64,000 bases of DNA from Phaeosaccion multiseriatum (taxonomy: Eukaryota > Protista > Ochrophyta, other classes). Below the pieces are notes generated by a model that was not told the DNA's origin, made no database searches, and was given only the letters and a program-made list of their open reading frames with translations. Within the stretch, counting starts at the first letter, position 1, and each line of letters opens with the position of its first letter. Below are positions 4,531 through 46,796 of this stretch, in pieces. The stretch is taken from contig OZ218962.1 of the NCBI GenBank assembly GCA_965112735.1, positions 310,001 through 374,000 on the forward strand. The letters are read 5' to 3'. Both the position numbers and the translations under genes were made by a program.

Positions 4531-6579
4531 ATGGGGAGCCTAAATCTCGCCGAGGAAGCCAACCCGAAGAAAAGGCAGAAGACAACCTCGACGACAAAGC
4601 CTGCCTTCTCCGCTTCGACCGCCATCGACAGTAGACAAGGGGGGAGGGGAAGAAAGGGGTCGGCAGCCGTTGACCGTAGAGCGGGGGGGAGGGCAGGAGA
4701 GGAGCTCGGCGGCGATGAGGCGCCTCCTGAGAGCGGCACCGCTGCTGCGATCCACTGGGACTCACCGCTTTCGATCGGACACGACCGTTTAAGCCCCTCG
4801 TCTGAGGAGCCAGAGGAGAGCGCTGCTAGGGAATTCAAAGAACAAGAGAGCTCCGCCTTCAGCTTCAGGCCGATGGGGAGCAGTGCTGATGAAAAGGAAG
4901 CGTCTATCCTTATGATGATCACTCCCTCTCGACCAATGTCGCCGATGAACGGCAGAAGACGTTGGTATTGCCACATCGGCGCCTGCCCAAGCGTTGCAAC
5001 AATCTCCGGCAAGTGCAAGAAGCACCACCGCATGTGGATCAAGGCCAAGAGGGCCAAGAGTCGGACGACTCCGGCCAGGGCCAGCACCATGGAGCTCCGT
5101 GAGCCTGCCTCCCCTGCTTCGACTGCTGCTGTCAGTACAGAGGAGAGGGGGACCGGGGACTCCGGTGGAGAGGAGAAGCGGACCGATGAGCGTGGCACGA
5201 ATGCTTCGACCAAGTGGAAGCCACCTCTCTCCATCCAACGCGACAGCTTGCGCCCCTGTTCGGAGGAGCCGGAGGAGATTGCTGCTTGCGAACTCAACGA
5301 AGAAGAGAGCTCCGCCTGCAGCTTCAGGCCGGTGGAGAGCAGTGCTGATGAAGAGGAAGACTCTATTATCATGGTGGTCATGCCCTCTCGACCGATGTCG
5401 CCGAGGAACGGCCGAAGGCGTTGGTATTGCCACATCGGCGCCTGCCCAAGCATTGCAAAGAAATCCGGCAAGTGCAACAAGCACCACCGCATGTGGAGCA
5501 GGGCCAAGTGGGTCGAGGAGGAAGGGGCTAGGCCTCAGAGCTCCGCTGCCGCGACTGACGGTGGAAAAAGCAAGCCTGATGACAGCTTACGGAGAGGGGT
5601 GTGGACGGTGGAGGAGGAGGAGTACGCAGCTGCTGTCATTCACCACTTCAGCAGGGGCTCCCTGCCCACGCCGTTACAGGAGGGCACGTCTCTGTTGGCC
5701 TTCCTCGCTGAGAAGCTGGCATGCAGCACCAGGCGAGTTCAAAGAAAGTTCCATGGTCTCATACATTGGAGCAGCATGAAGCAAGCGCATCACAGCGCCC
5801 TCTCGGGGGTGGAGCGCGACAAGGTGGAGACAGAGCTCCGGGAGCTGGAGGCAAGGTTCCAGGCGGGCCTGGACTCGGCCTCAGGACAGGCCCTTGTCGA
5901 CTCGGAGACGGCCCCTCTCGTATCCTCGGGGGGGTTGTCCCCTCCCCCCCTGCCGCAGGGGGTTGGACCGGACGCGGTCGGTAGCGCTGAGTCTGGTGGG
6001 GAGACGAAGGCTGGCCAAGAGCTTCGAAAGGAAGGGACAGGGCTGTCAGCGGGTGATGGTCTTGAAGTAGAGGAGCGGGGTGATGAGCAAGCGGTGCCTC
6101 TGAGGGGAGAGGCCTCAGTCGAACACGGTGTCGAGAGGGAGGAGGAGGCCAAGGCAGCTGCCCCTGGGGGCACGCTGAGTATCGGGGACGAGGTGGAGCT
6201 GCCTAACAAGCGCTGGAGGAAGCTTGACGACCACTTCCCGGCTGACTTGGACGGAGAGGGGCAAGAGGAGGCCGTGGGCGCGACTTCGAGGGGCGTGGTC
6301 GTGACGGTATGCTCCAAGAAAGTCCGGCTTCTCCCCCTCTACGCTGTAGGAGCCGAGTACATGCGGGGAGGGAAGCTCAGCAGTGGCGATGCTGCAGCGG
6401 TCAGAGGCTTCTTGAAGGCCTATCTGGAGGCCTACGATGCCTTCGAGGAGCTGAGCGAGACTCTCCCGAGGGAGTGGGCAGCGCTGGCGAGGCGAGTGGT
6501 GGTGGTGAGAGAGAAGAAGCAGGAGGGGAGGAAGGCGCGGAGAGAGATACGCCGCATCGAGGGGCCAAGCTATCTGTGA
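4531..6579 (+). CDS. Intronless 682-aa putative transcription factor: two C-x4-C-x8-C-x2-H fingers plus a stramenopile-type Myb-like 'LRRGxWT' domain
   Basis: WYCHIGACPS..SGKCxKHH occurs twice. LRRGVWTVEEEEYAAAVIHHFSRGSLP..GTSLLAFLAEKLACSTRRVQRKF matches a motif I recognise from oomycete/diatom proteins. Confidence 0.7.
   Translation: MGSLNLAEEANPKKRQKTTSTTKPAFSASTAIDSRQGGRGRKGSAAVDRRAGGRAGEELGGDEAPPESGTAAAIHWDSPLSIGHDRLSPSSEEPEESAAREFKEQESSAFSFRPMGSSADEKEASILMMITPSRPMSPMNGRRRWYCHIGACPSVATISGKCKKHHRMWIKAKRAKSRTTPARASTMELREPASPASTAAVSTEERGTGDSGGEEKRTDERGTNASTKWKPPLSIQRDSLRPCSEEPEEIAACELNEEESSACSFRPVESSADEEEDSIIMVVMPSRPMSPRNGRRRWYCHIGACPSIAKKSGKCNKHHRMWSRAKWVEEEGARPQSSAAATDGGKSKPDDSLRRGVWTVEEEEYAAAVIHHFSRGSLPTPLQEGTSLLAFLAEKLACSTRRVQRKFHGLIHWSSMKQAHHSALSGVERDKVETELRELEARFQAGLDSASGQALVDSETAPLVSSGGLSPPPLPQGVGPDAVGSAESGGETKAGQELRKEGTGLSAGDGLEVEERGDEQAVPLRGEASVEHGVEREEEAKAAAPGGTLSIGDEVELPNKRWRKLDDHFPADLDGEGQEEAVGATSRGVVVTVCSKKVRLLPLYAVGAEYMRGGKLSSGDAAAVRGFLKAYLEAYDAFEELSETLPREWAALARRVVVVREKKQEGRKARREIRRIEGPSYL
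4750..5510 (+). repeat. Intragenic duplication, two ~300-bp copies (~4750-5050 and ~5215-5510)
   Basis: Near-identical DNA, e.g. gaagagagctccgcct..agcttcaggcc and cgttggtattgccacatcggcgcctgcccaagc, is present twice. Confidence 0.85.
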
Positions 6580-6714
6580 GTCAGTGAGCTAGTATACTAG
6601 TACGTAGGAGTACATTCTTTTTTTAATTTGTGGGATCACTGCAATAGTTGTACAGAGCAAGCCTGGCAGCCAGGCGGGCCATTGGGTGCCATTTCTTCTG
6701 CTGCGAGAGTCCAC

Positions 6715-7030
6715 TCCCGCCCCCTCGACTCTCTCGCTCGTTTCGAGGCAGTCATCTCTCTCCCCTTCAATGAGAGTCTTGCTTCGTTCGCTTGGAAGCG
6801 TCATCGGCTCCGCGCATGCCTGCGGCCACTTCCAGCATGGTCTCGGAACAGACGCCCCTCTCCTGCGGCGGTAGGCCCCTCTCCTTGCCGAAGGTCAAGT
6901 CGCACGTCCGCATAATGTCCGCAGGGCTTTGCGAGTCGAAGTACCGCTTGTCTGCAACCAGAAGATGATGAAGGACCTTTTGCAGGGCACGACGCGCTCG
7001 AGTCAGAGCCTTGCCCACAGACGCAGCGCC
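6715..7030 (-). pseudogene. Truncated 3' remnant of the ankyrin gene family found at 61393-63222
   Basis: ASVGKALT...ADKRYFDSQSPADIMRTCDLTFGKERGLPPQERGV..LEVAAGMRGADDAS aligns with the C-terminus of the 61393-63222 ORF. Sequence beyond the stop is also similar. No ankyrin repeats upstream. Confidence 0.8.
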
Positions 7031-7118
7031 AACGCCTCCACGCCGCCATTGAAGTACACCGCCATTGAAGTACACCGCCATGACGAGTGGAGCCCATTGC
7101 GCTGGCTCTGAACATCCT

Positions 7119-9206
7119 TCACTCTTGCAGCACGAAAGACTCCTGAGCCTTGCGCGCTCGCGCCTCCCTTCTCCTTCGGTACCGCTGAGTCCAGCGCAAG
7201 GATCCCCGCGCCCGAACCGCCAGAGCATCGCGGCTGCCGTCGGCCCCTCCATCCCCACCTCGACCCCCTTCCTTTCCCCTCCTCCCTCCGTACAAGAAGC
7301 GGTTCTCCTTGTCCCTCACTCGCTCCTCTTGCTCTTCTTCGGCCGCCTTCTGCTGCAAGCGCATTGAGTCAAGGACCCAGGCCATGTCTTCGTCCCCACT
7401 CCTGCCCGCAACACCACGCTCTTCCTCCTCCTCCTCCTCCTCCTCCTCCTCCTCCTCCTCCTCCTCCTCCTCCTTCCCGCCTCCCCCCCCCTCTGAGACT
7501 CGTGCTCCCCAGTCTTCTCCCCAGGTGTGCGCCACTCCGAAGCGAAGGCTGGACTGCAGCAGAAAGCCCTGCCGCAGCACCGCCCCTAGCAGGAGCAGTT
7601 CCTTGGCACTAGCGGGGGCCAGCTGCACCACCTGGTCGGCGTACGGGCTGGTGAGCTGCAGCACAAAGCCAGTGGGGGCGGCGAAGTCCCCCAACGCGCA
7701 TTGGAGCACTCTCAAGCCGCAGTTCCGCAGCAGAGAGAGCCTCCGCCAGTCGCCATATGTCTCTTGCCGAGCCATCCCTCCTCCTCCTCCTCCTCCTCCT
7801 CCTGCTGCTGCTGCTCCTCTTCTCCTCCTCCTGCCGCCGATCGTGCCACCAGCCTTACCAGCGTCAGATAAGGTCTGGGTTCCTAAGATGCGGCCGCTGC
7901 GGGTCAGGAAGCTTCGTCCTCCTCCTCCTGCTGCTCCTCTTTCCCTTGTCCATTCCTCCTCCTCCTCCTCCTCCTCCTCCCCCTTCTCCTCCTCTCCCCT
8001 GTGCACTCCCCCTCCTCTGCCCGCCGAGCCCCCCTTCCCCCCGAAGAATCGCCTTGCCGCCCACACCACGCTGCCGTTGATCAGCAGCCCGCCCCTCTCC
8101 CACGGCTGTCCGTCGGGGTCCTGCCCTGCCCGGAGCGCCTTGACCAAGCAAGTCGTGCTGCGAGTCGTGGGTTCGAGTCCCTGCGCGAGGCGAACCTCCG
8201 CCAGAGCCCACACATCTGCCGTAATCTGCTCCACGCCTACGCCGTGTATTCGAACCACCGGCCGTGAAGGGGGAGCCGACGCTGACGCTGCCACTGAGGC
8301 TGAGGCCGAGGATGAAGCCACTCGTCTCTCCCCTCCTCCGCCGACTCCTCCTTCCCCCGCTTCCCTGACGCGCTCGTCGCCTATCGTCCCAGTCCTGACA
8401 CCTATCGTCCCAGTCCTGACACCTGGTGCCATCGCATCGCCAGAGGCAGCAGCTCCAGCTCCAGCTCCGGTATTTGCCGACGGGAGGGGCTCTTCAGCAA
8501 GTATCAGGCCTGAGAACGCCTCACGCGCTGTCAGCTGCCGGCGATGACCCCCCTGGGGCTTCCACGCCCCCCCCGGGGTGGGAGGAGAGGTCTCTCCCTC
8601 CGCAAACGGCTCCAGCTGCCGCCTCTGCTCTCCCTCTCTCCGCCTCCTGAGTGCGAGGGACGAAGGGGCCGTGGTGAGGCTTCTCCGGTGATGCCTCCCT
8701 GTTACTGGGCCCCTCGCTCCTGCTGCCGTTGCGCCCACCGAGCCCAACAAGCCTGCACCCCTCCCCCCGGCGTCTGATAGAGCGCCGCTGCCTCCCAGCC
8801 TGCCGATGCTGCTGCTGGCCCGCCTCCTGTGTGCACCTCCTCTGGAACTGACTGCGCTTCCGGGAAGGAAGGGAGACGGGAGTCCCGCCCCTCCCATGGA
8901 CCGTCTGCTCAAGCGCTTCTCCCTTGGGCTTGGGTTGAGGCTGCTGCTGCCTGTTCCTCCCAAGGGCGAGGTCCCAATGGAAGACGACATGGGAGACAGC
9001 CAGTCTCGCTCTTCTGCTGCTGTATCACCAACTGCTGCTGCCATACCGGGAGGTCTGGCGAACATGCTAACCCTACTCTCCCGCATTGCACCGCCCGAGG
9101 CCCGACTGTATGCTCCTCTTCCTGCTCCTCTGAGACCATCGAGGAAGGCCAGGCTTCTTTTCCGTGACAGCGGAGGGGGGAGATTTGCGCTGTCCGACTC
9201 GCCCGT

Positions 9207-9238
<32 letters not shown>

Positions 9239-10750
9239 CGCTGACAAGAGCGACATCATTACGACCCATTCCTCCATGTCCATCTTGGGTATGACCCCGA
9301 ACCTCGCCCTCTCCCTGCATGGGTTGTGAAACAGAGGGAGCAGATTCAGCGAGCCGATCGCGCACGCTTGGGACTCCTGTATCGGTCTCGATGTCACCCC
9401 TTTGCTCCAGACTCTTCCTGCTCTGAACTGTAGCGGGACTGTCGGTGTCGAGGCCTGTGCTCTCCCGAATGAGGCTACGTCTCGCTCTCCTGCCGCCCTC
9501 GTGCCCTTCCGGGAGGAGAGGTGTAGACGGTGCGGAGGACTGTTGTGGTTGGTCAGCCAGGGGGGGTGGGAGGGTAACAGCAACAGCAACAGCAAGAAGG
9601 TCAGGAGGAGGGAAGGGCCAGGAACAGGCATAAGGCGAGGGGAGGAAGAGGGCCGCGGGGCGATACTATTTGAGCAGATGGACAAATGGGGCGATACATT
9701 TGAGCAGCTGGACAGACAAATGGGGAAGAAGTCAGTCACGCAATCCATTGCTCACCCCAATTTCGCTCCCCTCCAGCGCAGAAACACCGGCCTTAAATGG
9801 AGAAGACGGAGGCCCCTGCGGCTCCGACTGCTGCTGCTCCTTTTGAGATGTGTAATACCACGCCGCGCCTCCTCGGCCTCCCAACGCTGCTGCAGCGGGG
9901 ACCACACCCTTCTGCTCTGCAGCCTCATTGCCATCTGCCACCCCTTCCCTCTGCTGGAGAGGAGAGGCGCCGACCGAGGACCCCCTCCGCCGCACCAGAC
10001 TCCCCTTCCGCGTCAACACCCTTACCCCGCTGCTGCTGCCCCTGCCGTGGCGGATGGGTTTGGTGGGCGGCCATCTGCTCGACAGGCTTCCCTTCTGCGC
10101 TCTCGTCGCATGGATCGGGGGAGAGGACGGGTTACTGTCGAGGTCGCCGGAATTGTTCAGGATGTTCTGCTTGCTGCTGCTGCTCACCACTAGCGACTGG
10201 CGCAGCCTTCGCACCTCGGCTCGGGCGTCGTCCTTGAGTCGCGCTTGCCTTGCCCACTCCCTCTCCGCGTCGATTCCAGGCAAGGAAAACGCAATCGACT
10301 TCCTCCCATTGTGCCGCCCTCCACCGGTGGTGACTCCCCGCCTTGCCTTGTTATTGCTGCTAAGATTGCTGGTGCCTTGCCCATTCTCTCCTTTCGGTGG
10401 CAACGGGGGAGTCGTAGCTGGGGGTGCTACTCCTGCGGCCGCCGCGTCCGTCACAGCGCTCCCCAGCTTCGACTGGGCTCGCTTGGCGCCAGACGAAGGC
10501 GTCACGGGGTGGTGCCCCACACTGCTGCTGCGTCTGTTTCGCCTGTTGGTCGGCCCTCGGAAGGGGCACTCTCCGCCAGCCTCATAGAAGCCCATCTGTT
10601 CAAGGTCCTCTCTCAAGAACTGGCGAGGGCCGACAGCGAAGATATAAAGAAGTCGAAGAGAAGGCACGAGGGGAGGAGGTACACTGGCAGTTTAAGGGCT
10701 TGGGGCCACGGGTTTGAGCAAGGAGAGAGAGAGGGAGAGAGAGAGGGAGG

Positions 10751-10797
<47 letters not shown>

Positions 10798-11067
10798 AGA
10801 GAGGAGAGAGACGGGGGGAGGGAGAAGAGAGAGAGAGCATAAGCATTAGCGCTAAAAGATCAGAACAGACCACTGAAGGAAAAAAAGGAGAAAGGAGTAG
10901 CGGAATCGGGATTTTCTCACCTCCTCCACCCTCCCGTCCGCCTGAGCGGACGCCAGGCCACCGGGGTTGGTGGCTTGCTTCAGAGCCACCGCCCTATCCA
11001 GCACATTCTTCCGGGTTATACCGCTGCTGGTACGGCCCCTCCTGTGTCTGTGTGCAGCAGCGGCCAT
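7119..11067 (-). CDS. Large low-complexity hypothetical protein (multi-exon)
   Basis: Co-oriented long ORFs 11067-10921, ~10620-9756 and 9365-7119 are separated by plausible GT-AG introns. There is a globular-looking stretch near the C-terminus (VVRIHGVGVEQITADVWALAEVRL...FVLQLTSPY). No family recognised and exon boundaries are approximate. Confidence 0.55.
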
Positions 11068-17040: not shown

Positions 17041-17270
17041 GCGTGTGAGGTCCAGCGGAAGCAAGGACGTGCGCGGAGGGCTTTGGCTGAGCAGCGGTGC
17101 GGCTTGGGAGGCGATGTGCTGCATAGCGGTGGTAGAGGGGTGGGAGCTCGTGCTTCCAAGGCCCTGGGCGGTTACTTTCCTCGTGTGGCGTGCGGGGCTG
17201 TGTGTTGGCGGGCGTATCGAATAGCGAAGGACAGAAGAGTCCCACACATACACATCGACCCCTGACGTGC

Positions 17271-17412
17271 TATTATGCTATCTGCTATCGCCGGCGCCAG
17301 CCGGCGTGCTATCTGCTATTGCCGGCGCCAGCCGGCGTGCTATGTGCTATCGCCGGCGCCAGCCGGCGTGCTATGTGCTATCGCCGGCGCCAGCCGGCGT
17401 TTTGTGCTATTC
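17271..17412 (+). repeat. Left subterminal tandem repeats (~31-bp unit, gctatcgccggcgccagccggcgtgctatct/gt, 4-5 copies)
   Basis: Directly visible tandem array adjoining the left TIR. Confidence 0.9.
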
Positions 17413-17664
17413 GCCCCCCCGGGGTCGGGGGTGGGAGGGTGCGCGTGCGGGGGGCTAGGAGCGGAGGAAGCAACTCACACGTGTTTCATTGCCATTAATT
17501 CGCGTCAGTTCTTGTATAGTATGCCTAAGGGAGTATATCAAGGTCCACCCTCTGCCTGGCCTGGCTGACCTGCTGCCCGTGCACCCCTACCTCTCCGCCC
17601 TGTGATTGACTGGCTCTCCGCTAGCTCAGCCGGCGGACGGCCCGATCGACATTGTGCTCGCCAA

Positions 17665-20600
17665 TCAGTCACTTTTACCACTAGGGCAGGCAGCATTCAC
17701 TCCGTCACAATACCAGTCCCCTTCAGGAAGCGTAGAGAGGGGAGGGGTCAGGCAGTACGTGTGAAACTCCTCATCGCAGCCGTCACATAGCAACATTTTG
17801 TCGTGGTCAACATCTTTCTGACAGACTAGACATGCAGTGGCTTCGCTGGAGCTAGAGTCTGCTGCTTTTGCCGTGCCACGAGACAAAGCCCCATAACTCT
17901 CGGGCTTGTTTACCGTGCGCCCACGTGAGGACATCGCCCCCACCACCTTTCCGATGATGTTCTTGCGCAGTGTTCTCAGGTTCAGCGCCTCCTGCTCGCC
18001 ATCACTGCTATCGTCCTCAGACATGTCCTCTCCCATGTGCACGCTTGGGTCGGGGGGGGCGTATCCCATCGCCTTGGCCACCTCTTGGCCCTCCGCCTCT
18101 CTGTTGACAATCTGCTTGCACTCCTCGTGCTGCTCCTCCGTGATGGCAAACCTCCGAAGCCTTCTCTGCGCGCACACCCCTCCTGAAGCTGCATGTGAGC
18201 CTTCGATGTACATTGCTTCGTGGTAGCGGGGCAATGCGCCATAAATGGCAGCACAAGACACAGAAGCCTCTTTCCCGCCGTCGACTTCGTAGACGACTGC
18301 TGCAGCCCCATCCCCGTCCTGGGACTCGTCGGTAGAGTCCTGTTCAGCGACGTGAAAGTATGAAACACCAGGCTTTGCCGGAACCACCTTCTGCTTGGAG
18401 CCTCGTCCCTTCTTCGAGACGATCACCTCCTTCCGAAGATCGACGCGAAGCTGTGCAAGAAAAAAGCTCTCCTCCGACCCCTTGTCTGCCCTGACTATCA
18501 CAACGTCATTTGCCCTGTAGAGAATGCGAGTTCGGACGGATTCACCGGTCTTCCGTCCTTTCTGTCCGCGCTTCCTCGCTCCCGAGCTCTCATGCAAGCG
18601 CGACAGGTATCCACTCGGGTCGTTGCTTTGCGCAGAGTTGGGAGCAAACGCCACCGAACGCGGGGCCGCTCCAACATTGTACTTCCTCTTGTTGGTTACA
18701 CGCTGCTGCGGAACCTTCCTAAGACGAGCCGCCGCATTGCGAAGCGTCTGCGTGTCCTTCTTGCGCTGCTTCCGTTGCCCTTCGTCAAGCTTCTCCGCTA
18801 CCCTTGGTCGCTTCAACACGGGTGAAGCCACCAATCTGCTCTCGTTTTGCTCCAGCTGGTATCCCGCCCTGAGCTTTCGACCGCTGCTGTTGACGCTGCT
18901 TGTGCAGTAGGCAAAACCCATGCTGGGGTTGGCCTTCTTCGCAGCCTCAAGCATCACAAGGCCCCTTCTTCGGGCATACTCAAGAGCGTCTGGAACATCC
19001 TGGCGGCCTTCCCTTTGCTTCGTGAAGAAAGTCTCAACATTGAGGGTCAAAACGCTCCTCATCTGCATCTTCTCCACGATGCCGCGAGGCACTCCCTGCT
19101 GACGGAAATGAGCGAGGAAGCATCAAGCAAGGAGCGAACAGCGAAGCCGTGAGACGAAAGGGCAAGGCTGATTTCCAAACGCACGCGCCCACGGACACGG
19201 ACATTTTTACTCACGCACTCACGCACACACACGCACACAGCCATGGGGAGCACCCCCTTCTCACCTCTGCAAGCATCCGATGTAGCATCCGAGGTAGTGC
19301 CTGCAGGCTCGCCTTGATAGCACCTCGAACTTCGCGTGATGGCATTCCTTCAGGGCCCTGGAGAGAGACCAGGGATTTGCCTGTGGCAGCTGATATCGCT
19401 TTCCCCATGTGACTGAGAGCCAAGTCGACCACATGAAGCTTGGCAATGCTCTCCTCCATCGTGCGTGCGTTGTTTTGCATGTCTTTGCCATTCTCATCCA
19501 AGTCTTCGCCCTGGAGCTGATACGCCTCACTCAACATCCGTTGTAGTGGGATGAGGTGCTGGGCGTAGACGTAGCAGTCCGAGATCATTCGAATGCACTG
19601 GTTTCCAGTGTCGGACAAGAAGAAAACGTTGTACACGAAGCAGCCGAACGTAGGTCTGAACAAAGGTACTTTCGATGCCGTACCGCTGGCAGTGCTCTCT
19701 CCGGGTTCTGTGTTTCCCTGTCCGCCCATCAGCACGGATGATCCCTTCCAGCTTAGCACCCCACTGTCACGACGAAGGAGAACCTTGACAAGCGCATGCA
19801 AACCTTCATCTAGCATGAGGATGACGATCATATCTTCATCATCGTATGCACCGGGTGGGGCCAACGTGAGTCCACAAGGCTGAGTCCCCACGTGAGACTT
19901 CACGCACGTGAGGTGTGCGCGCCTTGGCTTCTCAACAGTACCATCTTCCTCGTCATCAGTCAGAGCCATGAGTGTATCTCCGTCATTGCCACTGCCACCC
20001 TCTGGTCCTCCGGCACGTTCCACATTGCCCTCCCAGACAAAAAGCGAGCTGTCGGCGATGCAGGCAACGCAGTCATGCGAGAGTGCTGTGAGGCCCGCAG
20101 GTCCCTTGGGTAGGTCACACAGCTTCTCGCTCACAGGTGCAAAAGGGTTGCCAGCGTCAAATGAGAGCCGGTGTAGTGCTCCCCCCCCGCCAGGTTCCTC
20201 TTGGGTGACAAAGAGGTCGAACGCGCGCTCAGAGGACACGGCAAGCGCAATGGCAACGGGGCAACGGATGCCCTCCTCTTCTCTCTCCTCGAGGACATTC
20301 TCCTCAGAAGTGCAACGCTCCTGGATCCGACGGACCAAGGGCACTGCCTTCAAATTCAAATGCCGTTGCTGAGTCTGTCTCCCCCGACCACGCGCTGCTA
20401 CATGCCCGTCCGGTTGCTGGTCGTCGTCATCATCATCGTCGCCCTCCTCCGCCGCCGCGCGGGGTCCCCTGTTTCCTGGAAGAGCGGCCAGCACATGCAC
20501 CACCCAAATCTGATTCGCTCCACTGTCACACATGTACACGTAGTCGCCAACCACGACGAGAGACCCAAGACTCTGGAAGCAGTCGTCTCGCAGAACAACC

Positions 20601-22947
20601 TCTGTGGTACAAGGCACATGATGGGCCTTGAGCATGCGCAGATGCCTGCCTGAACGATCGGCGTTGAAGATCATGCCAGAGCCATGATGGTAGCCCATAC
20701 CAGTCGGCTTCTGAGTCTGCGAGGCCATGTTCTGATGCCAGAAACCCCACGGCTCCGGGCACACGGTCACCCCCACGAGAGCACGGCGCTTCTCCCGCTC
20801 CTCCTCTGAGAGTAGAGCCAACTGCAGAGACGCCGTCGTAACAGCGATTGCGCTCTCCACTGAGAAAGGATCCTTGTTTTCAATGGCGTCAAGGCCAACA
20901 TTGGCTTGTACTGCTTCACTTCGAGCCGGGTCCAGATCGTGGAATCTGGCGCGAAGAGTTCGCAGTCCGACTAGCCAGCCCTGGCAGACGACCCACCAAT
21001 TGAATGTCGTAGCACGAACACACTTTACAAGGTGAGCCCCGTCAGGCAGTGCCTCATACCACCCCAGGGGGTCGTCCTCTCCGAGGGTTCTTGCCGCCAT
21101 TTTCCGAATGAAGGCAAGCTGTGCGCCATTACAGTCTGTTGAGATGCACAATGGTCGGAGACTCTTGCACACGAGCCCTTTCCTCTTGCACCTCGAGCAG
21201 ACTCTGCTGGAGAACTGAGTCGCGCAAACGCACTCACTTTCACCGCAAGGACCCTCCCCTCCGGTGGGACAAGCTTGGTGGCAATCACACGCCTCGCCCA
21301 TCTCCACCCACGAGGGGTTCTCCCCCGTCAGAATCCGCTGCCAGAAAAGCTCGAGACAAGGGATGCAAACACGCAGCGCCTTCATGATTTCGGTCACGCT
21401 CGCGGCAACACTTTTGTAGTCACCCCCTGCGGTGTGAAGCTGAAAACCGATGGAGCCCGTGTATGCCCCTTTCAGATCCATCATCATAACTTCCATCATC
21501 TCGGAACCCAGCTTAGGTGCGTCCTCGTCTCGCAGCTGGAACAGAACGAGTAGCGATAAGGGAGGGTTGACAGGAGGCGAAGCAAAGGCGGGGCTGCAGC
21601 GTGAGCGAGCGAGCGAGGAGGCGTGATTAAGATTGACGATGGATCAACAGTGATTCTGCCCCGAAAGATCAGTGGGAAGGAGGGGACGCCACGCACCTGA
21701 GCATCAGACTTTTCCAGTATTGCCTTCGCCTGCTCCAGTGTTGTATTTCCAAACTGATGTGCATTGCCCCAATTGGTTTGGCTGGTTGTATCAGTATGAT
21801 GGCCCTTGGCAATGACGAAGCCATCCATTTTGACAGTCACGGGAACCACAATCTTCTCGTTGCCTTTGTCGCCAAGAGTGTAGGCTTGGTCGGCACAGAA
21901 GCGGGCGAAGACATTGACGACGTTGATAATGTCTTCGACTTGCAGACCGTACCTCTTGATTAGGCCAGGCCTGCGCCTAATGAGTGCTCTCGGATGAAAG
22001 CCGCCTGTGTTCGCCCTGCGGAAGTAGTCCTTCATGGCCTGGTCCCTGGAGACGTTGGGGCCACGAACCTTCTTTCTGCGGGGTGCCCCATAGGAGAGCA
22101 TGGAGCATGCTGAACCAAATACGTTCTGCTGGGTCTCATTAAACTGTCGCAGCGTCTCGTAGCCATTGAGCTGCTTGCTCGCGGCCACAGTCTGACGCCT
22201 GGACCAAAGGCCGCTGTTCATGACCCAACGATGCACCGTTTGATACATGAAGTGACTCCGAGTAAAGTGCCCTCGATCAAGATGGAATTGGATCGCAAAG
22301 GGAACAATGTCGACATCGTTTACGTCCCGGGTAAGCTCTACACGCCCGCTGTCCGCGTCTTCCGTCACAGCCACCCGCCCATGGTCTTCTTCTGTCGCGG
22401 ACGAGCCCGCGGCGCCCATCGCCTTTGTTTGTGGCCAAATGTGAAACGGCAGAATCTTTATTGGCTTACAGCTGGCTGGGCCCATGGCTGGGCCCCACTG
22501 GTTCAAAAGTCCTTCATGTCTGGCCGCGATGGAGGGAGGAGTTGGGGGGGGGGGGGCGACTACTACAACAGCAGGAGAGGCACGCCAAGTCCAGTTGGCA
22601 GCAGGAGTCGGAGCCGGGAGAAGGCCCCTGAGAGGGCGAGGAGAGGGAGGAGTGCCAGCAGGAGTTGGAGCAGGGAGAAGCACAGTGAGAGGAGGAAGCG
22701 AGGGAGAAATGCCAGCAGGAGTCAGAGTAGGGGGAAGGACACCGAGAGGAGGAGGGCAGGGAGAAGTACCAGCAGGAGTCGGAGCCGACCCAGATCCGGA
22801 GGAGGAGGAGGGAGGAGGGAAGGAGAAAAGGGTCGAAGCAAAGGGAGACGGGGCCGCAGTCCCAGCGAAAGAGGATTCCCAGCAGGCGCGAGGAAAATGC
22901 GTCGGAACCAAAGTCCCAGCGACAGGGGAGTACGCCGAAGCAGCCAT
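17665..22947 (-). CDS. Multi-domain P-like DDE transposase with Cys-rich insert, NHL-like beta-propeller insert, BAH-like segment and C-terminal PHD finger; 3 exons
   Basis: Exons 22947 (or 22485)-21697, 21535-19265 and 19095-17665 join in phase 0 through GT-AG introns. Motifs: VTVKMDG (D at 21823-21825), CISTDC (D at 21134-21136), PDGAHLVKCVR (DxxH), KDPFSVESA, LTLNVETFF..R....P..LEY (E at 19033-19035). PHD: CLVC..LLCDGCDEEFHTYCLTPPL..PEGDWYC. Confidence 0.8.
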
Positions 22948-24445
22948 TCACAACACGCTTCTCACGAGCTGGGGTGGGAGGAGGGGGGGCGGCTTGAGGA
23001 CACCTATCTCCAGAGTACGGCAACCTTGGCATCGTCTTCTGAGGCACAAGACTTCGATTATGCCTTGCCCCTGAGTGCAGGGATGGGACAGGCAAAACCT
23101 ACCCCTCTCATGTTCGCGCATGTGGGGACATTTCCAAGAGGATGCCTCAACCCCGTCGAGGCTGATTTCAGTCTCGGCACATCGGTGTCCTGCAACACGA
23201 CCGAGCTCTTCGAGACCTTGCCCTACACGTTCCAGCTGGCTAATGAAGACAAGCGATTCTCCAGCTTCAAGGCCTTCCGTGGACATTTGACCAGCGAATT
23301 GCTCTTTCAGACGGAACAAAAGAAGAACGACATCACGATCAGAGCCTCCACGGCATTCAGACGTGGCAGAGGGTTGGATACAATCCGCGACGACGTCTCC
23401 CTGCGCCGCGTGGTACGTGTCGGGTACAACTGCCTCTCGATGTTTGTGCATTGTCTGCTACGGCAGCAACCCTTTCTTAAACCCGCCCCCCCCGCCCCTC
23501 TCTGTCTCTTTCTCCAACACACACCCAATACAGGTGCGCTCGTTCTACACTTTCCCTCCGGGCCGTATCGATCCCGACAAACGGTGGAGACTGGATCTGT
23601 ACTGCGAGCTACGCCCGAAATCAGGGGCGAGACAGCAGGAGAACGTGCAAATTTGCCTGTCTTTCCCTACCCAATCTCTGGACAGCGCCACAGATTTTTC
23701 GACCCATACCCCACCCAAGAAGGCAGGTCATCGAGGTGGTGCTGCCCGTGTCAGTGAGACCACCAGTGATAGTGAGGGAGAGAGTGCCGGCGGGACGAAA
23801 GGCGGGAAGGCGGGGCAAGAGGGGGCACTGACGAAGAAGGCGAAGAGCTGGCTCCACGCGCAAGGAACCAAGTTCTTTTATCTTTTGCGGGAAATGCCTG
23901 ATGTGGAGATGCAAACTCTCAGCGGAAGCAAGGTCGGTGATGCAGCAAGCTTCGTGAAGATCCATACGCCAGCTTTGATTCAGCTTGAGGCCAAAGCGAA
24001 CTTCTCCATCAGACACGCCAGAACATCATTGGATATGCTGGTATCTGTTGTGTGCACCAGGCCTGCTTGTCAGAGCGCCGGGAAGGGCAAGTACAAGCCT
24101 CAGTGGACTCATTTGTCTGGCGTTAAGCGCCACAGAGACTCCCACTCATCGAGCGGTCAGAAAAGCATGCAAGCTGCACTCTCTCACTTCCTACTGAAGA
24201 CGGCGTTGGGGAAGCAGGAGGAGGAGGAGCAGGAGGAGGAGGAGGAGGAGGAGGATGATGGTGGTGGTGATGATGATGATGAGGAGGAGGAGGAGGAGGA
24301 GGAGGAGGAGGAGCAGGAGGGGGAGGAGGAGGAGCAGGAGGAGGAGGAGGAGGAGGAGCAGGAGGGGGCAGCAGCCCTTCTTCCCACCAGAAGAAAAGCA
24401 GGGCCATGCCTGCGGCACAATCAGTGGCCGAAGCTGAGCAGCTGA
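22516..24445 (+). CDS. Transposon accessory protein, N-terminal part: RS-rich repeats, unknown domain, C2H2/BED-like finger, acidic tract
   Basis: ATG at 22516. A GT-AG intron at 23413-23533 joins the 22231-frame and 23363-frame ORFs in phase 0. CTRPAC...HLSGVKRHRDSH is a candidate finger, followed by poly-Glu. Confidence 0.55.
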
Positions 24446-25317
24446 CAGGGGACATGAAGGCGAGGCTGCTTGTCCTCGGCGCTGAGCAGGACATGCACAA
24501 GGAAAAGGGGGAGTACACCTCCTTCTTTTTGGACGCGATGATGACCACTGTATCCGTGAACGGAAACAGGGCACTACTCCCGTGCGCGTCTCTTGGTCAC
24601 ATTTTCAACCCAGCTGTGGAGAACTCCCCCATGCCCAACGTGTTGGCGACGGCTCCGAAAGGGTTCCTGCCGAAAGGTTACAGGGAGTCTGGTCTTACAA
24701 TGACGAAGTGTGAGCTCCTCGTCCTCCCTGCGAGTTTCAGCGGCCATTTCTCGACTGTCGCTGTCCTTCTACCTACCTCTGCAGCTAGTGACGACGGGGA
24801 GGGTGCTATGGCGTACATTCTGCACTTTGATACGGTCCGAAATGGGCGCCTCGGTCACCACCCTTCGAAGCGAGTGCTCCAAGCGACGCAGGTGTATGTG
24901 GAGAAGGTCATGGAGGACGAAAGAGCCCCTGGGACGGCAGCCCTCCGATTCCGGCAGGTCTTTGTTGGTGTGCCACAGCAGAAGGCCGGCTCGAATTCTT
25001 GCGGTCCGGCAACAGCTCTATTCATGTCGAAATTGGCTGTGGCAGACACCAGCCCCGTGCGCAAAGTGCTCTATGGTGTTGAGCAAGACAACAGCTGGGA
25101 AAGGGACGACGGTGTAGCGATTTTGTCTAGTGCGGCGGGGGCAAAGAAGGAGACCGTGGACCGCTTCTTGGCCGCGTGTGGGCTGCCGTGTCTGACCTGC
25201 GAAGAGTATGAGGCAGAGAGAACTCGCCTCTTTCGGGCGTACCTGAGCTCCGGGATGCGCAACGGTTCCTTGCCCGACGTTTACAACTCGGCCTTGCATA
25301 AGTGCGTCCTGGGTTAG
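24406..25317 (+). CDS. Ulp1/SENP-like (peptidase C48) cysteine protease carried by the transposon
   Basis: Catalytic residues in C48 order: LVLPASFSGHFSTVAV (His), YILHFDT (Asp), VPQQKAGSNSCG (oxyanion Gln and Cys). Confidence 0.8.
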   Translation: MPAAQSVAEAEQLTGDMKARLLVLGAEQDMHKEKGEYTSFFLDAMMTTVSVNGNRALLPCASLGHIFNPAVENSPMPNVLATAPKGFLPKGYRESGLTMTKCELLVLPASFSGHFSTVAVLLPTSAASDDGEGAMAYILHFDTVRNGRLGHHPSKRVLQATQVYVEKVMEDERAPGTAALRFRQVFVGVPQQKAGSNSCGPATALFMSKLAVADTSPVRKVLYGVEQDNSWERDDGVAILSSAAGAKKETVDRFLAACGLPCLTCEEYEAERTRLFRAYLSSGMRNGSLPDVYNSALHKCVLG

Positions 25318-25485
25318 TGAAGGAGAGATGGCTGCCTCGCGAGAGAGGGAGATGGGGGGAGAGGGGAACGCCAAGGTTCGCCCAGTCACCATTGTATTGG
25401 TAATATAAGACTGAAGGCTCGCATACTCTCTGCGCTCGACGTATGCTGATTAGGCAGGCAGCTAGGAGTGGAAAGGCTGTCGCAG

Positions 25486-25615
25486 GGCGTCTGCTATCGC
25501 CGGCGCGACGGGGCGTGCTATCTGCTATTCGCCGGCGCCAGCCGGCGTGCTATCTGCTATTCGCCGAGTGCAAATAGCATGCTATTGGGCGCCGGGGCGC
25601 CCAATAGCATGCTAT
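25486..25615 (+). repeat. Right subterminal repeats plus a perfect 20-bp hairpin
   Basis: gctat(t)cgccggcg units occur in the same orientation as the left array. atagcatgctattgggcgcc-gg-ggcgcccaatagcatgctat spans 25574-25615. Confidence 0.9.
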
Positions 25616-25765
25616 CGCAGATAGCATAATAGCACGTCAGGGGTCGAATACACAGTGGCGCTCAAGAGTTAAGCAAAGTATAGACCTGTAGTCGATGATG
25701 TTAATGACAGTACCGCCGACGAGTACATTGTAGCCGTAGCCGCTCCATCGTCGGCCGTACTGTGG

Positions 25766-27852: not shown

Positions 27853-28496
27853 AACCTCCGAAGAGAGAGAAACATGACCGGCCTAGGGGCCTACTAATAG
27901 TAGGCCAAATGTCAAATGTCCGGCTGGGGCCGATGGTGATGGTGAGCGCCGGCACGAACCTCCATGGGCACTGGCACGTCGTCGCCACTGCGTCAAAACA
28001 ATGCAGCACTGTGTTTCTTGCACGTAATACCACGCTTTCAAGAGACATACCCAATAAAAAAAAAAATCTCCGTCTCTCTTCGCCCTCCTCGCTCGTCCAC
28101 CAAAAACCAATGCCACAGTATACGCCACAACAACAACACACTCACTCGCCACTCACGCCCTGAGCTACTTCAAGGATTTGCCCCAATTTTTATGGGAGAA
28201 AAAGTCCTTGGAAATTGCATCACATTACGATAGACCAAGCAAGATACGAAGGGAATGAATGTGCTCAAAAGTGGAGGTCACAGGGGAAAAAGGGGGGAGG
28301 GAGGCGATTTCGATTTTGGGCTTCCAGTGCGAACCAAAGGGAACACCATGAGGGGACCATCTCAACCGCCAGGATGCAGCGCTAACTGGAGAGAGAAAAC
28401 GCACTCAGCACTCAAGTCGTAGGCTAGTTAGACCCATTGTGTGCTGCTACTACTGCTACCGCTATATCACCAACTGCTGCTACTGCTACCGCTGTA

Positions 28497-40765: not shown

Positions 40766-42122
40766 TCAATCCAACAGCTTCGAGAAGAGAGTACTTGACA
40801 GCTGGACCTTGCGTGTTGGAGGGTCCCCGCTGCTGCTGTTGCTGCTGCTGCTGTCCCTACTGCTGGACGCCTCTTGAGCAGACGCTCCAGCACTCCCCCC
40901 CCCCTTCGCCGCCTGCTGCTGCACCACTCTTCTGAGCACCTCGCCTGCCTGGACCACGTTCTTTGAACCGACCTCGTCAAGAGCGGCGATGCGCTCCGAA
41001 ACAGCAGGACGGGCCTTTCGCTCTGACAGCTTGGGGCCGAACTTGCCGCCGGGCTTGTAATCTGCACGACGGAGAGGGGGGAAGGGAGAGGAAGGAGGAG
41101 GAAAGGCCGGGGGAGGGGGAGGGGAGGGTAAATGGGGGCGGGGCGGGGAGAGACTGAAGGAAACTGTCGAAACTGTCAAGGGGAGAGAGCAGCCTGAGTA
41201 AGACCTCTCGAAAAGGAGTCATTCGCCGCCATTGCGTGCCTCCGTTCCCCTGCCATGCCCCCCCCCCCCCCCCCTAGTGCTCCCTTCACTGCAGAGAGAA
41301 CAGCCCTCATTGACGGTAGGAAGAGCAGAAAGACAGACAGCAAACGAGTCGTACTACTTTACCTTCAACGTCGACGTACTCCACATTGGGGTCGGGGTTC
41401 TTATCCCTCTCCGCCTTCTCCTTCTCCCACTTATCCGTCTTGTCCTTCTTCTGCTGCTCCCTGCTGCTTATCATGTGCTGACTCACCACGTCCTGTTGGT
41501 GGAAGCGGTCTTCCGGAAGGATGTCGGTTTCAGAAAGCGGCGCCTCCATCGGAATGCTCCCGTCGCCCTCCCCCTCGTATACGCCGCTGTACTTATTGTA
41601 CCCCTCGGGGAACTTGAGATGAAACTTGTCCTCTGCAAACTCGGGATCCCCCCCCTCCTCCTCCTCCCCTCCCTCCTCCCCTCCCTTGTTCTTGCCGCCG
41701 CTGCTGCTGTCCCCTCCACCTGCCTCTCTCTGGAGAGCGCGAGCCAGCATGTAGGGTTGCGAGCCTGCGTCCGGAAGCACCGCTAGATCAGTCTTATCTA
41801 CCCTGAGCTCCACCGTGATGGCGCACATGTGGGGGTCCAATGAGGCCTCTGCAGAGCTGGGCAACACCGCGTAGGGCAGCAGCCGAGTGAGCGGGTGGTG
41901 CCCCGGCAGCTTGGCCACCAGTTGGTACTCCGACAGCCGCAAATTCACAGACCTCAGGCCGGCCTCAGAGCACAGCTCCGGGTCCAACCCTTGCAGTTCC
42001 ACCTCCAGCACATCGGGCCAGGCCTCTACCGGCTGCTCCAGCATGCTGTCGGGGGCCTCCAGAGCGGACATGTCTAGAGCTTCCTCCCGACCGATCCAGC
42101 GAGCTTTGATGCTGCCCTTGAG

Positions 42123-42180
<58 letters not shown>

Positions 42181-43846
42181 TCCGGGGAGTTCATTTGCGT
42201 ATTGCGTTTTGCGTGTAGAGTTTTGAGTTTTGGTGGTGTTAGAAGCGAAGTGAGGCAAAGAGAAGGAGTGAAGCACGCGTGAAGCATACGGTCGTGGTGT
42301 TGAGCAAAGCCAGCAAGCCTGGTCTGACACGTTGGGGGGGGGGTGAGGCAGGAGAGGACGCACGCACCCACAAGCCAAAAGCCAAGGAGAAAGGAAGTAC
42401 CACTTGTCCGCCCGACTCGGAAACCCAAACGAACCTGCGACAGGGGCTTGGACGGTGCAGCTGCAGCCCTCTGGGGTGCCCTCGCCTTGGGCCTTGTGTC
42501 GGATATCTCCTCAATCTTGGGCTCGAGCTTGATGTCTCGGATGTACTGGGCCACAGTCTCCACCCCCTCCCCCTTGTAGGCAAGCTTGGGTAGCTTGTAC
42601 TTTGGGTCCAAGGTGCATTTGTACTTTGTCTCAACGTACTGCATGGCCAGGTGGCAAATGAAGTCCCGGTGAGTGCCTGAGCGGAGGGGACAGCAGCAGC
42701 AGCAGCAGCAGCAGAGTAGTTCACCGTTCATTGTTCATGAAACAGTCGGTGGGTCAGCAATCTAAGCGGCATGGCTGTGGCCTTATCTGGCTTACAATCC
42801 GTCTCCCTCCTCACCTGTCTTATCGTCCTTGGCCTCCTGCAGCACCTTGGGATTGAACACGGCATCGTACACCGTGCACTCGGCGCCCTTGTTGTCCGTC
42901 ACCTGTCGGCCGGGCCCGATGCTGATGGGGATGTTCAGACCCTCCACCTCCTCCCCCTTGTCGTCCAGCTTCTTCTTCTGCGACGGCTCGGCGATGAGCT
43001 CGCTGGAGCACACGTTTATGAACACTTTGCTGCCATCCTCGCCCCCCTCGCCGCCCCCTCCTCCCTGACTGTCGGCTGCAGCTGGCACCAGAAGCTTGGT
43101 CTTGACGGCAAAGCCCTTGTCAGGCACCATCTTGATGCCCTGCTGCTTGGGAGCGTGTGCGCTCAAGCCAGGGAGGTCCATTTTCGCCGCCCTTGCAGCA
43201 GCCGAGTCCCCCTCCATTTCCCCTTCTACACCCAACCCCCCTGGCCCTCCCGGCCCTCCCAGCCCCCCACTTCCAGTTCCTATGCCGCCCGTCCCCGCTG
43301 CTGCTGCTGCTGCTGTTGCTGCCGAGCCCCCTCCCCCTGTGTTCAGTGACTTGAGGGCCTCAAGCAGCCCCTCCACCCCTTCTCCTCCGCCTGGACTTTG
43401 CTTCCCCTGTTGCCCCGCAGGTGCAGGACGTGCGGCCGCCTCCTCCGCCAGCATCTGCGCGTAGGCCTCTGGGTTCTCTGCGGCAAGCTTACTCATCTGT
43501 TCCATGTACTGCATCAGCATCTCGTACTGGAGAGAGTTTGTGGGGGCAAGAACGGACAGAAAGGAGGGGCGCAAGGCCGTGAGTAAGGCACGAGCGAAGA
43601 GGCCAGCGAAATGGAAGTGAGAGGAGCGCGGCTCCCCTCATCCCGCTCCGGCCTATCGCTGGGAAGGAGTTGTCTCCGCCCGCTTAGTGGCCTCACCTCT
43701 TCAGGATTGTTCTGCTGCAGCTTCATGAGCTGTTGCACTTGCATCGCTGCAGCACTGTCCTCATCGCCGTCTCCGCCCATTTTCCCAATAGCAGGCATCT
43801 TCACCTCCTGAATGCTACTCTTCACCTCCTGTATGGGGGCGACCAT
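40766..43846 (-). CDS. PIH1-domain protein (R2TP-like / axonemal dynein pre-assembly co-chaperone family)
   Basis: MVPDKGFAVKTK..KVFINVCSS..LNIPISIGPGR..DNKGAECTVYDAVFNP..FICHLAMQYVETKYKCTLDPKYKLPKLAYKG is a PIH1 N domain. It is followed by a CS-like region and an LPEDRFH motif. The exact subfamily was not assigned. Confidence 0.88.
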
Positions 43847-44005: not shown

Positions 44006-44307
44006 ACTCGCCCCCGGGTGCCGCGTTTGGAATCCACAACCACAACGGGTGATGATGTCGACGTTTCTGTGATTTTTGGGCCACCAACACGCAAACTGGC
44101 CTTCCTCCCCCTTTGATTTGATATCCTCTCAACACTTTTTAAAGGAGGATCAAAGGAGAAGGAGCTGTGCTGCAGGTGGAGATGGTGTCCTTGCTTCCGC
44201 AGATAGGTAGAAGTTCTTCCCCAAAGGAAGCAGGCTCAGTCGTATGGAGAGAGGAGAGGAAAGGCACGTGTCAGGGACTCGAAGGGACGAGGTGGTCGCC
44301 TCCAACT

Positions 44308-44826
44308 TCGGCCCCGTGCACGCCTAGCGGCCTAGGCCTATTTTGGAAAATTGCCCGGCCTAGCGAGGGCTGTAGGCCCTCGGCCTATTTATAGGCCGCC
44401 TAGGCGGCGGCCTAGGCGGGGGCCGGAGGCCCGCGGCCTAGGGCAGACGCCAACTAGGCGCAGGTCCAGGGCGGGAATAAGCTCGTATGCCCCTGGGCTG
44501 GCCCGGAACCCGCCCAAGTGTCGTCAGTTTTAAGCAAATGTATTGCATGGGATAAGTGAGGAGTAGACTTGGTTCGTGTTGTCTCTTTCCGCCTCGCTGG
44601 CCCTACGAGGAGTGCAGGCCTACAGGTGTGCTGCTACCCACTGGCTGGGCGGCACCACGCACGCGCCCACGGTCTGGGAGGCTGCCTAGAGGCGGGCTAA
44701 GGCCGCCTAGGGCTGAAAAGTGAGCGGCCTAGAGCGGCCGGAGGCCGCCGGCCTAGGCCTATTTCAGCCGAAGGCCGAGCGGCCTAGCGGCCTAGAGCCT
44801 AGGCCGCTAGGCGTGCACGGGGCCGA
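44308..44826. mobile_element. 519-bp MITE / non-autonomous TIR element
   Basis: TIR TCGGCCCCGTGCACGCCTAGCGGCCTAGGC (44308-44337) is the exact reverse complement of 44797-44826. TCCAACT flanks both sides (44301-44307 and 44827-44833). Many internal GGCCTAG/CCTAGG motifs; no coding capacity. Confidence 0.93.
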
Positions 44827-44829
44827 TCC

Positions 44830-44883
44830 AACTATCGAACTATCGAACTATCGAACTATCGAACTATCGAACTATCGAACTAT
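44830..44883. repeat. 8-bp tandem repeat (aactatcg, ~6.7 copies) starting within the MITE's right TSD
   Basis: Directly visible. Confidence 0.9.
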
Positions 44884-45815
44884 TGTACAGCGGGGAACGG
44901 CAGACAATGCAGAGAGGGGTGTCGCGAGAAAAGTTGAGGAGGCGACAGCAGCGGGGCTAATGAACGTAGACTCGACTCGGAATGACTGATGACTAAGACA
45001 GTCGGACTGACTGATGACTAAGACAGTGTGACGAAGCGTCGTGTCGTGTGAGCTCGCTCTTACGTACCGTAGGTCGACAATACCGAGACCAAAAAACTGA
45101 AATTGACAACCCTCTCCTCTCGCTTCCCCCCCGCCTCTCTGTTTCTCGCCCCGCCGCCAGGGCTTTCTCCCTTTTTTTATCGCTCCTCTTCTTTCTCTCT
45201 CTCTCTCTCTCTCTCTCTGACTCCCTCTCGTCTTTCGTTTCGCGTTCCTCTCAAAAAATGATATGAAGCACTGGCTCATTCCCTGCAGTGGTAGGAGGAG
45301 GAGAAGCAGCACCACGATCAGCAGCCAAAGCAAGTGTTTCCTTTCGTTTGCTTTGGCTGCTGATCGTAGTGCTGCTCCTCCTCCTCCTCCTCCTCCTCCG
45401 CCGAAGGATATACATCGGTCCTGACACCGCCCACTCCTTAAGAACATGGACTAAGATGGACTTGCGTCCGTCACACATGTACCATCAGCAGCAGCAGCAG
45501 CAGCAGCGGCAGCAGTGTCGTTCCCGGCTCTCCTTCGCAGACACAGGAGCCACTTTCGCCTCTCAAACGCTGTAGCAGCAAAGGGGGGGGCAAGAGGGGA
45601 GGGTCAGGACACCGCTTGCGGCACGACGGGACGTTTGAGTTGGGCACCAACACGTGTCTGCCCCACGGAAGAGGAGCGCCTAGCAGGCGGGCAGGGAGTG
45701 AAGAGAGCACAAACAGACAGCACCCCGAGCTCTCTCACCCCTCTACCTACCTACCCGAGCTGTCCTCAGCCCCCCCTCCCCTCTGCCCTCCTCCCCGCCC
45801 GTCCACCCGGGTCCT

Positions 45816-46796
45816 CTATCGTCCCGGTCCGTTCTGTCCCTCACCTGCGTCTCGGCGCCGTTTGCCTGCCTCAGCCATTATCAAGGCCGCGACATCGCCG
45901 TGGCCCCTCTCCTCCGCCATCTCCAGGGCAGTCTGACTAGCGTGCCGCCACACGTTAGGTCCTGAGATAGCGTCAAGGTCACAGCCAGCGCCAAGGAGGA
46001 CTTGCACAGATGCGAGGTGGCCCTGGGCAGAGGCGGACATCAAGGGTGTCAGCTCTCCCAGCCCTGACCTCATGTCGACGTCCGCCCCCCAGGCGAGAAG
46101 GACCCTGCAGATCTCCGATTGGTTGTAGATGGCCGCCAAGTCGAGGAGGTTATCGTCAGTGTCGTGCCCCGCCTCTGAGGCTTCCCCCACCACACCGCAC
46201 CTTTCCTCCTTGGACTCGTAGCGGTCCTTGAATTCCAACATCAGCTGCACCGCCCCCATCTCGCCGTGGCGTATCAGTTCTCTCAGCGTCACTGCGAAAT
46301 GGCTCTCGTAGATCGGGCTCTCCTTGCCTTGCCACTCCTCCAGAAACACCCGCAGCAGCGCCAGGCTTCGGCTGCGGGCGCAAAAGAGGAGCACTGATTG
46401 GTGCTCTGTGCTTGGCGGCTCTCCAGACGCTGCCTCCCATGTAAGAAGAGTCCGCAAGGCCTCGGGATTCAGGTCGTTGACAAGGGCCAGGAACACAAAC
46501 GCGATACTTGCGGTCGCAGCTCCGGAAGAGAGGAGAGCTTCCATGCAGTCCACGTGATTGTTCAAAGTCGCCAACATCAACGCGTTCATCTCACAGTCAT
46601 CGTGCGTCCGAGCCCCCGCTGCCACCAGAGCTCGAACAACCTCGACGTGCCCGGCATCCGAGGCTTCCTGCAGAGGAGACCGAGTACGTGTGCTCGCTTC
46701 GACGAGCCTGGCATCTTGTGCAATGAGAGCCTCCACCGCCGCGGTGTTCCCCTCTCCAATGGCTTCAAAAAGCGCGTCCTCCTTCGATTCTCCCAT
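45816..46796 (-). CDS. Intronless ankyrin-repeat protein (326 aa)
   Basis: ALFEAIGEGN, SPLQEASDAGHVEVVRALVAAGA, NALMLATLNNH, TPLMSASAQGH, TALEMAEERGH. Confidence 0.88.
   Translation of the reverse strand: MGESKEDALFEAIGEGNTAAVEALIAQDARLVEASTRTRSPLQEASDAGHVEVVRALVAAGARTHDDCEMNALMLATLNNHVDCMEALLSSGAATASIAFVFLALVNDLNPEALRTLLTWEAASGEPPSTEHQSVLLFCARSRSLALLRVFLEEWQGKESPIYESHFAVTLRELIRHGEMGAVQLMLEFKDRYESKEERCGVVGEASEAGHDTDDNLLDLAAIYNQSEICRVLLAWGADVDMRSGLGELTPLMSASAQGHLASVQVLLGAGCDLDAISGPNVWRHASQTALEMAEERGHGDVAALIMAEAGKRRRDAGEGQNGPGR

Follow-up and report, generated by a model that had tools for sequence, protein, structure and literature searches.

The stretch of DNA analysed here (64,000 nucleotides; contig 13, bases 310001–374000, of the alga Phaeosaccion multiseriatum), referred to below as the window, carries at 44308–44826 a 519-bp non-coding element. 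It is very probably a non-autonomous, cut-and-paste MITE, one of about 110–160 copies moved in trans, and part of a transposon lineage distinguished by TCGRCCCC tips and a propeller-bearing transposase. As a MITE it is ordinary, and a genuine mobile element; it is the lineage from which it comes that is unusual. The family corrects and sharpens the diagnostic signature of this poorly known group and, being young and abundant, provides a natural test of what the propeller-bearing transposase needs in a substrate. Since its similarity to the one resident family having intact transposase genes is limited to eight terminal bases, the MITE also raises the question of cross-mobilisation.

A preliminary description of this DNA had proposed terminal inverted repeats (TIRs) that are perfect over 30 bp, a target-site duplication (TSD) of 7 bp and short subterminal GGCCTAG motifs crowded at both ends, and all three are confirmed in the window copy (Table 1). 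The arms are complementary at 30 of 30 positions and are separated by 459 nt, and the TSD lies directly outside both of them. GGCCTAG is present eight times in the 519 bp (element positions 22, 50, 102, 128, 419, 443, 474 and 482), never more than about 135 bp from one end or about 100 bp from the other, whereas the other 63.5 kb of the window has three occurrences. These words are presumed to be transposase-binding sites. The core between the two clusters is kept across the copies of the family.

The MITE is flanked by a PIH1-domain gene (41307–43574, minus strand) and an ankyrin-repeat gene (45816–46796, minus strand) and is therefore intergenic. The window as a whole is about 59% G+C, with fragmented ORFs and microsatellites. 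A minisatellite of approximately seven 8-bp units (ATCGAACT, 44834–44888) begins directly after the right TSD, and because the TSD differs by one base from this unit the element must have inserted at the edge of the array.

Table 1. Features of the window copy of the MITE, and ends, duplications and subterminal words of related elements in the genome
Feature	Position or locus	Strand	Sequence and remarks
Left TSD copy, 7 bp	44301–44307	.	TCCAACT; exact 7-bp match, a 6-bp reading fails for the window copy
Left TIR, 30 bp	44308–44337	+	begins TCGGCCCC; 100% complementary inverted repeat
Left subterminal region	44338–44445	+	GGCCTAG words and two GGGCYGNAGGCCC near-palindromes (44367, 44420); motif map
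MITE core	44446–44680	.	non-coding, non-repetitive; no ORF of at least 150 aa and no Rfam family at threshold in the MITE interior
Right subterminal region	44681–44796	+	four GGCCTAG words and GGCCGGAGGCC; motif map
Right TIR, 30 bp	44797–44826	-	ends GGGGCCGA; inverted-repeat partner of the left arm
Right TSD copy	44827–44833	.	TCCAACT; read directly
8.4-kb element, 8,393 bp	17255–25647	-	autonomous-type, separate from the MITE; tip TCGACCCC; TSD ATACACA
4.8-kb family	L032, L040, L054, L055		tip TCGGCCCCTGACAAGG; TSD of 6 bp, GAACCT (one element, on L032)
Second MITE	nested in MITE copy L031		tip TCGGCCCCTGACATGC
Two more TCGRCCCC-type ends	beside fetched MITE copies		TCGACCCCTGACGCAC, TCGACCCCTGACTTGC
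TCGRCCCC-type end	adjoining a transposase fragment, contig 1		TCGGCCCCAGGCGAGG
7-bp TSDs of the MITE	window copy, L009, L031, L002		exact in the first three, one mismatch in L002
TSDs of the 8.4-kb family	seven copies		6 bp in four (AAATCA, CCTTCC, TTATCA, ATACAA), 7 bp in three (ATACACA, TCACTCA, TAAAGAT)
Subterminal word sets			GGCCTAG / GGGCCGNAGGCCC; GCTATCTGCTAT / GCCGGCGCCAGCCGGC

The genome was searched as 67 Mb in 22 contigs, near chromosome level. With up to two mismatches allowed, the 23-nt TIR tip has 227 matches in it (116 forward, 111 reverse), 87 of which are perfect; the same tip read backwards has none, and chance is thereby excluded. A DNA search with the whole MITE returned dozens of full-length matches at 87–100% identity, the copies falling into size classes near 520–530, 497, 450 and 420 bp. 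The family thus stands at about 110–160 copies, over 100 of them recent, and accounts for about 0.1% of the genome sequence, a figure of some value for annotation. Among seventeen clean full-length copies pairwise identity averages 97.3% (99% between nearest neighbours), and nearly all of these copies are nearest to one consensus-like copy. This star-like pattern is that of a burst, and the amplification is recent. In 39 TIR ends an A replaces the G at position 9 (TCGGCCCCATGCACG), often at both ends of one copy, which suggests a subfamily and not random decay. CpG-driven decay was considered as the origin of this variant and is not claimed, substitutions among the 17 copies being no commoner at CpG than elsewhere.

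Evidence of insertion comes from L022, in which one MITE copy is nested in another, giving a paralogous empty site. Once the inner copy and one TATATA are removed the outer sequence is collinear with uninterrupted copies, which have a single TATATA at this point; this fixes the exact ends of the MITE (TCGG ... CCGA) and a duplication of 6 bp. Further elements have inserted into copies L031 and L040. In the former (contig 1, 5488300–5489900; positions 245–1225) the copy contains the second MITE (tip TCGGCCCCTGACATGCTTCTGAG, with subterminal CTGCTTCCTGCTTCTGG words) along with about 700 bp of (TCCC)n, and another end, TCGACCCCTGACGCAC, starts 20 bp beyond the MITE. Two left-end fragments without a right TIR were also found. 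One, of 211 bp (L035; contig 5, 2167754–2168410), has intact ATAAAAA repeats (7 bp) on both sides, and the other, of about 210 bp (L048; contig 14, 1306384–1307039), has intact CTCTCA repeats (6 bp). They look like the products of interrupted gap repair after excision, and support a cut-and-paste mode with gap repair.

The family has the characters by which MITEs are recognized, that is, a length below about 800 bp, no coding capacity, TIRs, TSDs at independent copies, and many homogeneous copies. One might argue that a non-coding sequence whose single-stranded DNA has a much stronger fold than shuffled controls (z = -8.4) is instead a dispersed structured repeat, either a hairpin or an RNA gene. 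We consider this to be wholly improbable, since the strong fold is a product of the long TIRs, precise direct repeats of 6–7 bp are present at 20 copies, the nested copy restores an empty site, other elements have inserted into copies, and no Rfam family was recovered.

The preliminary description took a fixed 7-bp TSD as part of the signature of the group and named differing lengths at other copies as one of the observations that would speak against it. Precisely this was observed: 6 and 7 bp coexist. Twenty clean MITE copies have TSDs of 6 bp in 16 cases, all exact, and of 7 bp in four, one of which (L031) is ambiguous in length, its site lying within a TG run. The 8.4-kb family, in which TSDs were read from the predicted ends of its seven copies, has 6 bp in four and 7 bp in three. 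Taken over three families, including the 4.8-kb one, 6 bp is found in 21 of 28 clean cases. About three-quarters of the duplications in the lineage are therefore of 6 bp and the rest of 7 bp, and the window shows the minority length twice. A fixed length is refuted, and the corrected signature is a TCGRCCCC tip with a TSD of 6–7 bp, mostly 6. The MITE targets are twenty different, unrelated sequences which are richer in A+T than the genome; the 6-bp TSDs have 37.5% G+C against 59% for the genome and are without a strong consensus.

The TCGRCCCC tip heads at least six families in this genome besides the MITE (Table 1). The 8.4-kb family has seven copies with 97–100% amino-acid identity, five of them uninterrupted, and is the sole family seen with intact catalytic ORFs. 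The 4.8-kb family has at least three near-identical copies, with relatives on contigs 9 and 12. As it matches the profile of the catalytic N-terminal part only from position 275, it appears to be without that part and is probably non-autonomous. The copy on L032 (contig 3, 3065001–3075000; element at 4331–9128) has an open ORF of 570 aa and a PHD exon. The window also contains a solitary end, TCGGCCCCAGCCGGACATTTGACATTTGG (27870–27933, minus strand), followed by a GGCCTAC...GTAGGCC palindrome and then by (CA)n; this is probably a truncated terminus belonging to one more family of this lineage. The remaining TCGRCCCC/GGGGYCGA pairs in the window have neither a TIR past the octamer nor a TSD, and are not elements.

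With the 8.4-kb element the MITE clearly shares its TIR over the first 8 bp only (7/8 identical), and BLAST of one against the other yields one 16-nt word and nothing more. Derivation of the MITE from that element by deletion is thereby excluded, in agreement with what had been stated on first inspection. The accompanying claim, that a second, independent and recently active family of the same lineage is present, also stands, for a family which is non-autonomous and TCGRCCCC-ended. The subterminal word of the 8.4-kb and 4.8-kb families is GCCGGCGCCAGCCGGC, which the MITE lacks; neither of those families, in turn, has GGCCTAG. Membership in the lineage is evident from the TCGRCCCC ... GGGGYCGA termini and from the mixture of 6- and 7-bp TSDs, as in the 8.4-kb coding family; the fact that this mixture is common to both strengthens the case for a common lineage.

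When the 762-aa ORF of the 8.4-kb element was compared with 1.8 billion representative proteins, exhaustive search recovered 103 homologues, as against none with a word-index search. Pfam gave nothing for this ORF; in the last exon of the element it identified a PHD finger (E = 1e-11). A profile built from 37 homologues matched NHL propellers in the PDB (E = 2e-23), and propellers of this type were all that sequence and profile searches of the PDB returned, with no transposase among them. The AlphaFold (AF2) model (pLDDT 84, pTM 0.85) places the propeller at approximately residues 240–640, between two alpha/beta parts, and a Foldseek search with the whole protein was dominated by propellers. 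For structure search the N-terminal 250 residues were refolded alone (pLDDT 79). They resemble retroviral integrase cores (Z 5.5–5.7) and, somewhat lower, RNase H (Z about 4.4). Drosophila P element transposase occupies the top two Foldseek rows (6P5A and 6PE2) at weak E values of 0.46 and 0.72, and with VIA it gives the longest alignment (155 residues, Z = 4.1). PF21787, a TNP-like RNase H N-terminal model, matched two homologues, with E = 1.9e-4 (1 of the 37 homologues) and 0.023. Residues D122, D153 and H156 are conserved, the D153-x-x-H156 (DxxH) motif being invariant in 22 homologues.

The lineage enzyme is thus a DDE-type transposase of RNase H fold whose catalytic domain contains an inserted NHL beta-propeller and whose C-terminus bears a PHD finger. 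The designation P-like might plausibly, if weakly, be applied to it; Pfam gave no THAP domain for the ORFs of the 8.4-kb element, and what is inserted is an NHL propeller. A degenerate full-length homologue of the transposase on contig 10 (2891745–2893880; 32% identity) is broken by seven stop codons, each of them TGA.

Judged by its end sequence, the closest relative of the MITE is an element from a metagenome, L073 (JGI metagenome 3300045993, contig Ga0485826_0002296; 10,965 bp, 50% G+C). This element is 10,727 bp in length (87–10813) and has perfect 23-nt TIRs which begin, as does that of the MITE, with TCGGCCCC. It encodes P0001, the best full-length homologue of the 762-aa ORF (32% identity, E = 4.8e-88, residues 3–751), with a PHD-finger exon after it, an arrangement also found in the 8.4-kb element of the window. 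It also carries two large genes on the opposite strand. By hand count, the first 18 terminal bases of the MITE agree with those of L073 at 15 positions and with those of the 8.4-kb element at 10. Each end of L073 has five 33-bp subterminal repeats built around GGGCCG(C/T)AGGCCC; their core is a 13-nt near-palindrome, GGGCCGYAGGCCC, which is also found subterminally in the MITE, the family consensus having GGGCCGTAGGCCC and GGGCCGGAGGCCC at positions 60 and 113.

The presence of TCGRCCCC on L073 indicates that the terminal octamer is conserved between organisms, being present in one other organism at least, and this makes the lineage searchable in other genomes. The search signature originally offered for the group therefore survives in its tip and fails in its fixed 7-bp TSD. 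No TSD was seen at the L073 copy, whose flanks may derive from different copies merged in assembly, and the 6–7 bp rule is thus one seen in the P. multiseriatum genome. Among the homologue-bearing contigs examined, only that of L073 contained a complete element, those bearing P0002, P0006, P0009, P0035 and P0045 being too short to include element ends.

The ends, TSDs, copy number, recency, nesting and TCGRCCCC membership of the MITE family are established, as is its dependence on an enzyme encoded elsewhere. Long elements with the MITE TIR and a propeller transposase, the check suggested in the preliminary description, were sought in this genome and none was found. Each of the 87 perfect TIR ends lies in a copy that is MITE-sized, truncated or nested, and the unpaired ones among them, every one of which was fetched, lie in copies that are diverged, truncated, internally deleted or interrupted. 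Genome searches with the window transposase, the catalytic N-terminal profile and P0001 converge on the same 14 or so loci. At none of these does a listed MITE TIR end lie on the appropriate side at a distance of 10 kb or less; the screen covers the listed ends, and a decayed partner could sit among the approximately 100 imperfect ends outside the listing. A lone TIR end near one transposase locus (contig 7) closes an ordinary MITE copy extending away from that locus, and the downstream ends of six others have different TIRs or none, never that of the MITE.

Presumably the transposase supplied in trans would recognize the GGCCTAG / GGGCCGNAGGCCC subterminal words together with the TIR and would cut at the TCG tips, and the MITE would then be reinserted at target cuts staggered by 6 bp or, in about one-quarter of events, by 7 bp. 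As to which enzyme this is, we favour, at slightly better than an even chance, a lineage transposase resident in this genome, and so cross-mobilisation. We lean to the 8.4-kb family as its source because no other was seen with intact catalytic ORFs. The fact that this element and the MITE each lack the subterminal words of the other counts against simple cross-mobilisation by it, and this mismatch makes it nearly as likely that a partner similar to L073 has been lost.

If so, a cognate L073/P0001-type element was recently lost, is unassembled, or exists only in other strains, and the copies are the fossil of a burst which the 8.4-kb family did not mobilise. We take this seriously, at somewhat under an even chance. 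In both its TIR (15/18) and the 13-nt word the MITE is much closer to L073 than to the coding families resident in the genome, not one subterminal word is common to it and the 8.4-kb element, and the genome loci nearest to P0001 are at 32–33% identity, none being closer than the 8.4-kb family. One would then have to reconcile this with the youth of the copies (97.3% mean identity) and the 87 perfect TIR ends, which indicate that the source enzyme acted recently, and with an assembly of 22 contigs that is near chromosome level. Nor did a scan of the metagenome collection with the 20-nt MITE TIR reveal such a partner, as it gave a single chance 20-mer on a bacterial-looking contig.

A wider proposal, which we put forward as speculation and rate as rather unlikely, is that elements with TCGRCCCC ends and 6–7-bp TSDs constitute a superfamily-level eukaryotic DDE lineage distinct from P, its octamer conserved across distant hosts, and that the MITE is a recent orphan mobilised by the enzyme of elements whose ends resemble its own in the octamer alone. 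Were this true, the octamer and not the subterminal words would be the main determinant of cleavage.

It could also be supposed that the tip arose by convergence and that the MITE derives from another superfamily, for example Dada, hAT or Mutator. Its TSD length of 6–7 bp coincides with that published for Dada (PMC3706591), and no coding partner links it directly to the propeller transposase. We regard this origin as very improbable. Dada is without TIRs and targets small RNA genes, whereas the MITE has 30-bp TIRs and diverse targets; the unusual 6/7 mixture of TSDs is common to the MITE and the 8.4-kb family; and the architecture of the MITE ends (tip, family-specific words, and GC-rich near-palindrome) is that of the transposase-encoding L073.

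Among described elements a ready comparison is with BuT5, a P superfamily MITE with a P element partner in Drosophila (PMC3698922). Both are short and non-coding with TIRs and subterminal repeats, and each has two TSD lengths within one family (8/9 bp in BuT5, 6/7 bp here). BuT5 is mobilised in trans; unlike it, the present MITE has no partner that could be found in its genome. The published TSDs of the P superfamily are 7 bp (1360, Galileo), 8 bp (P) and 8–9 bp (BuT5) (PMC3698922), whereas those of the MITE are mostly 6 bp. The lineage transposase resembles that of the P superfamily in its RNase H fold and DxxH motif and differs in having no detected THAP domain and an NHL propeller in place of the GTP-binding insertion; the tips are TCG here, not CA. 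Dada elements have TSDs of 6–7 bp, are without TIRs, insert in U6, U1 or tRNA genes, and encode a DDE transposase of the hAT/P/Kolobok/MuDR-like group with a DxxH motif (PMC3706591). The TSD length and the DxxH motif in a DDE transposase are thus shared; the perfect 30-bp TIRs of the MITE and its varied, A+T-rich targets are not, and on these two grounds membership in Dada, compared here by description only, is rejected. The MITE family fits neither the P superfamily nor the description of Dada cleanly.

Plant MITE systems such as Stowaway/Osmar and mPing/Pong, which belong to other superfamilies and have TA or TAA/TTA TSDs, are likewise high-copy, homogeneous and non-coding. Their members are cross-mobilised and are tied to the enzyme by the similarity of their ends alone. 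The MITE of P. multiseriatum differs from these systems in that even its subterminal words are not those of the resident coding family.
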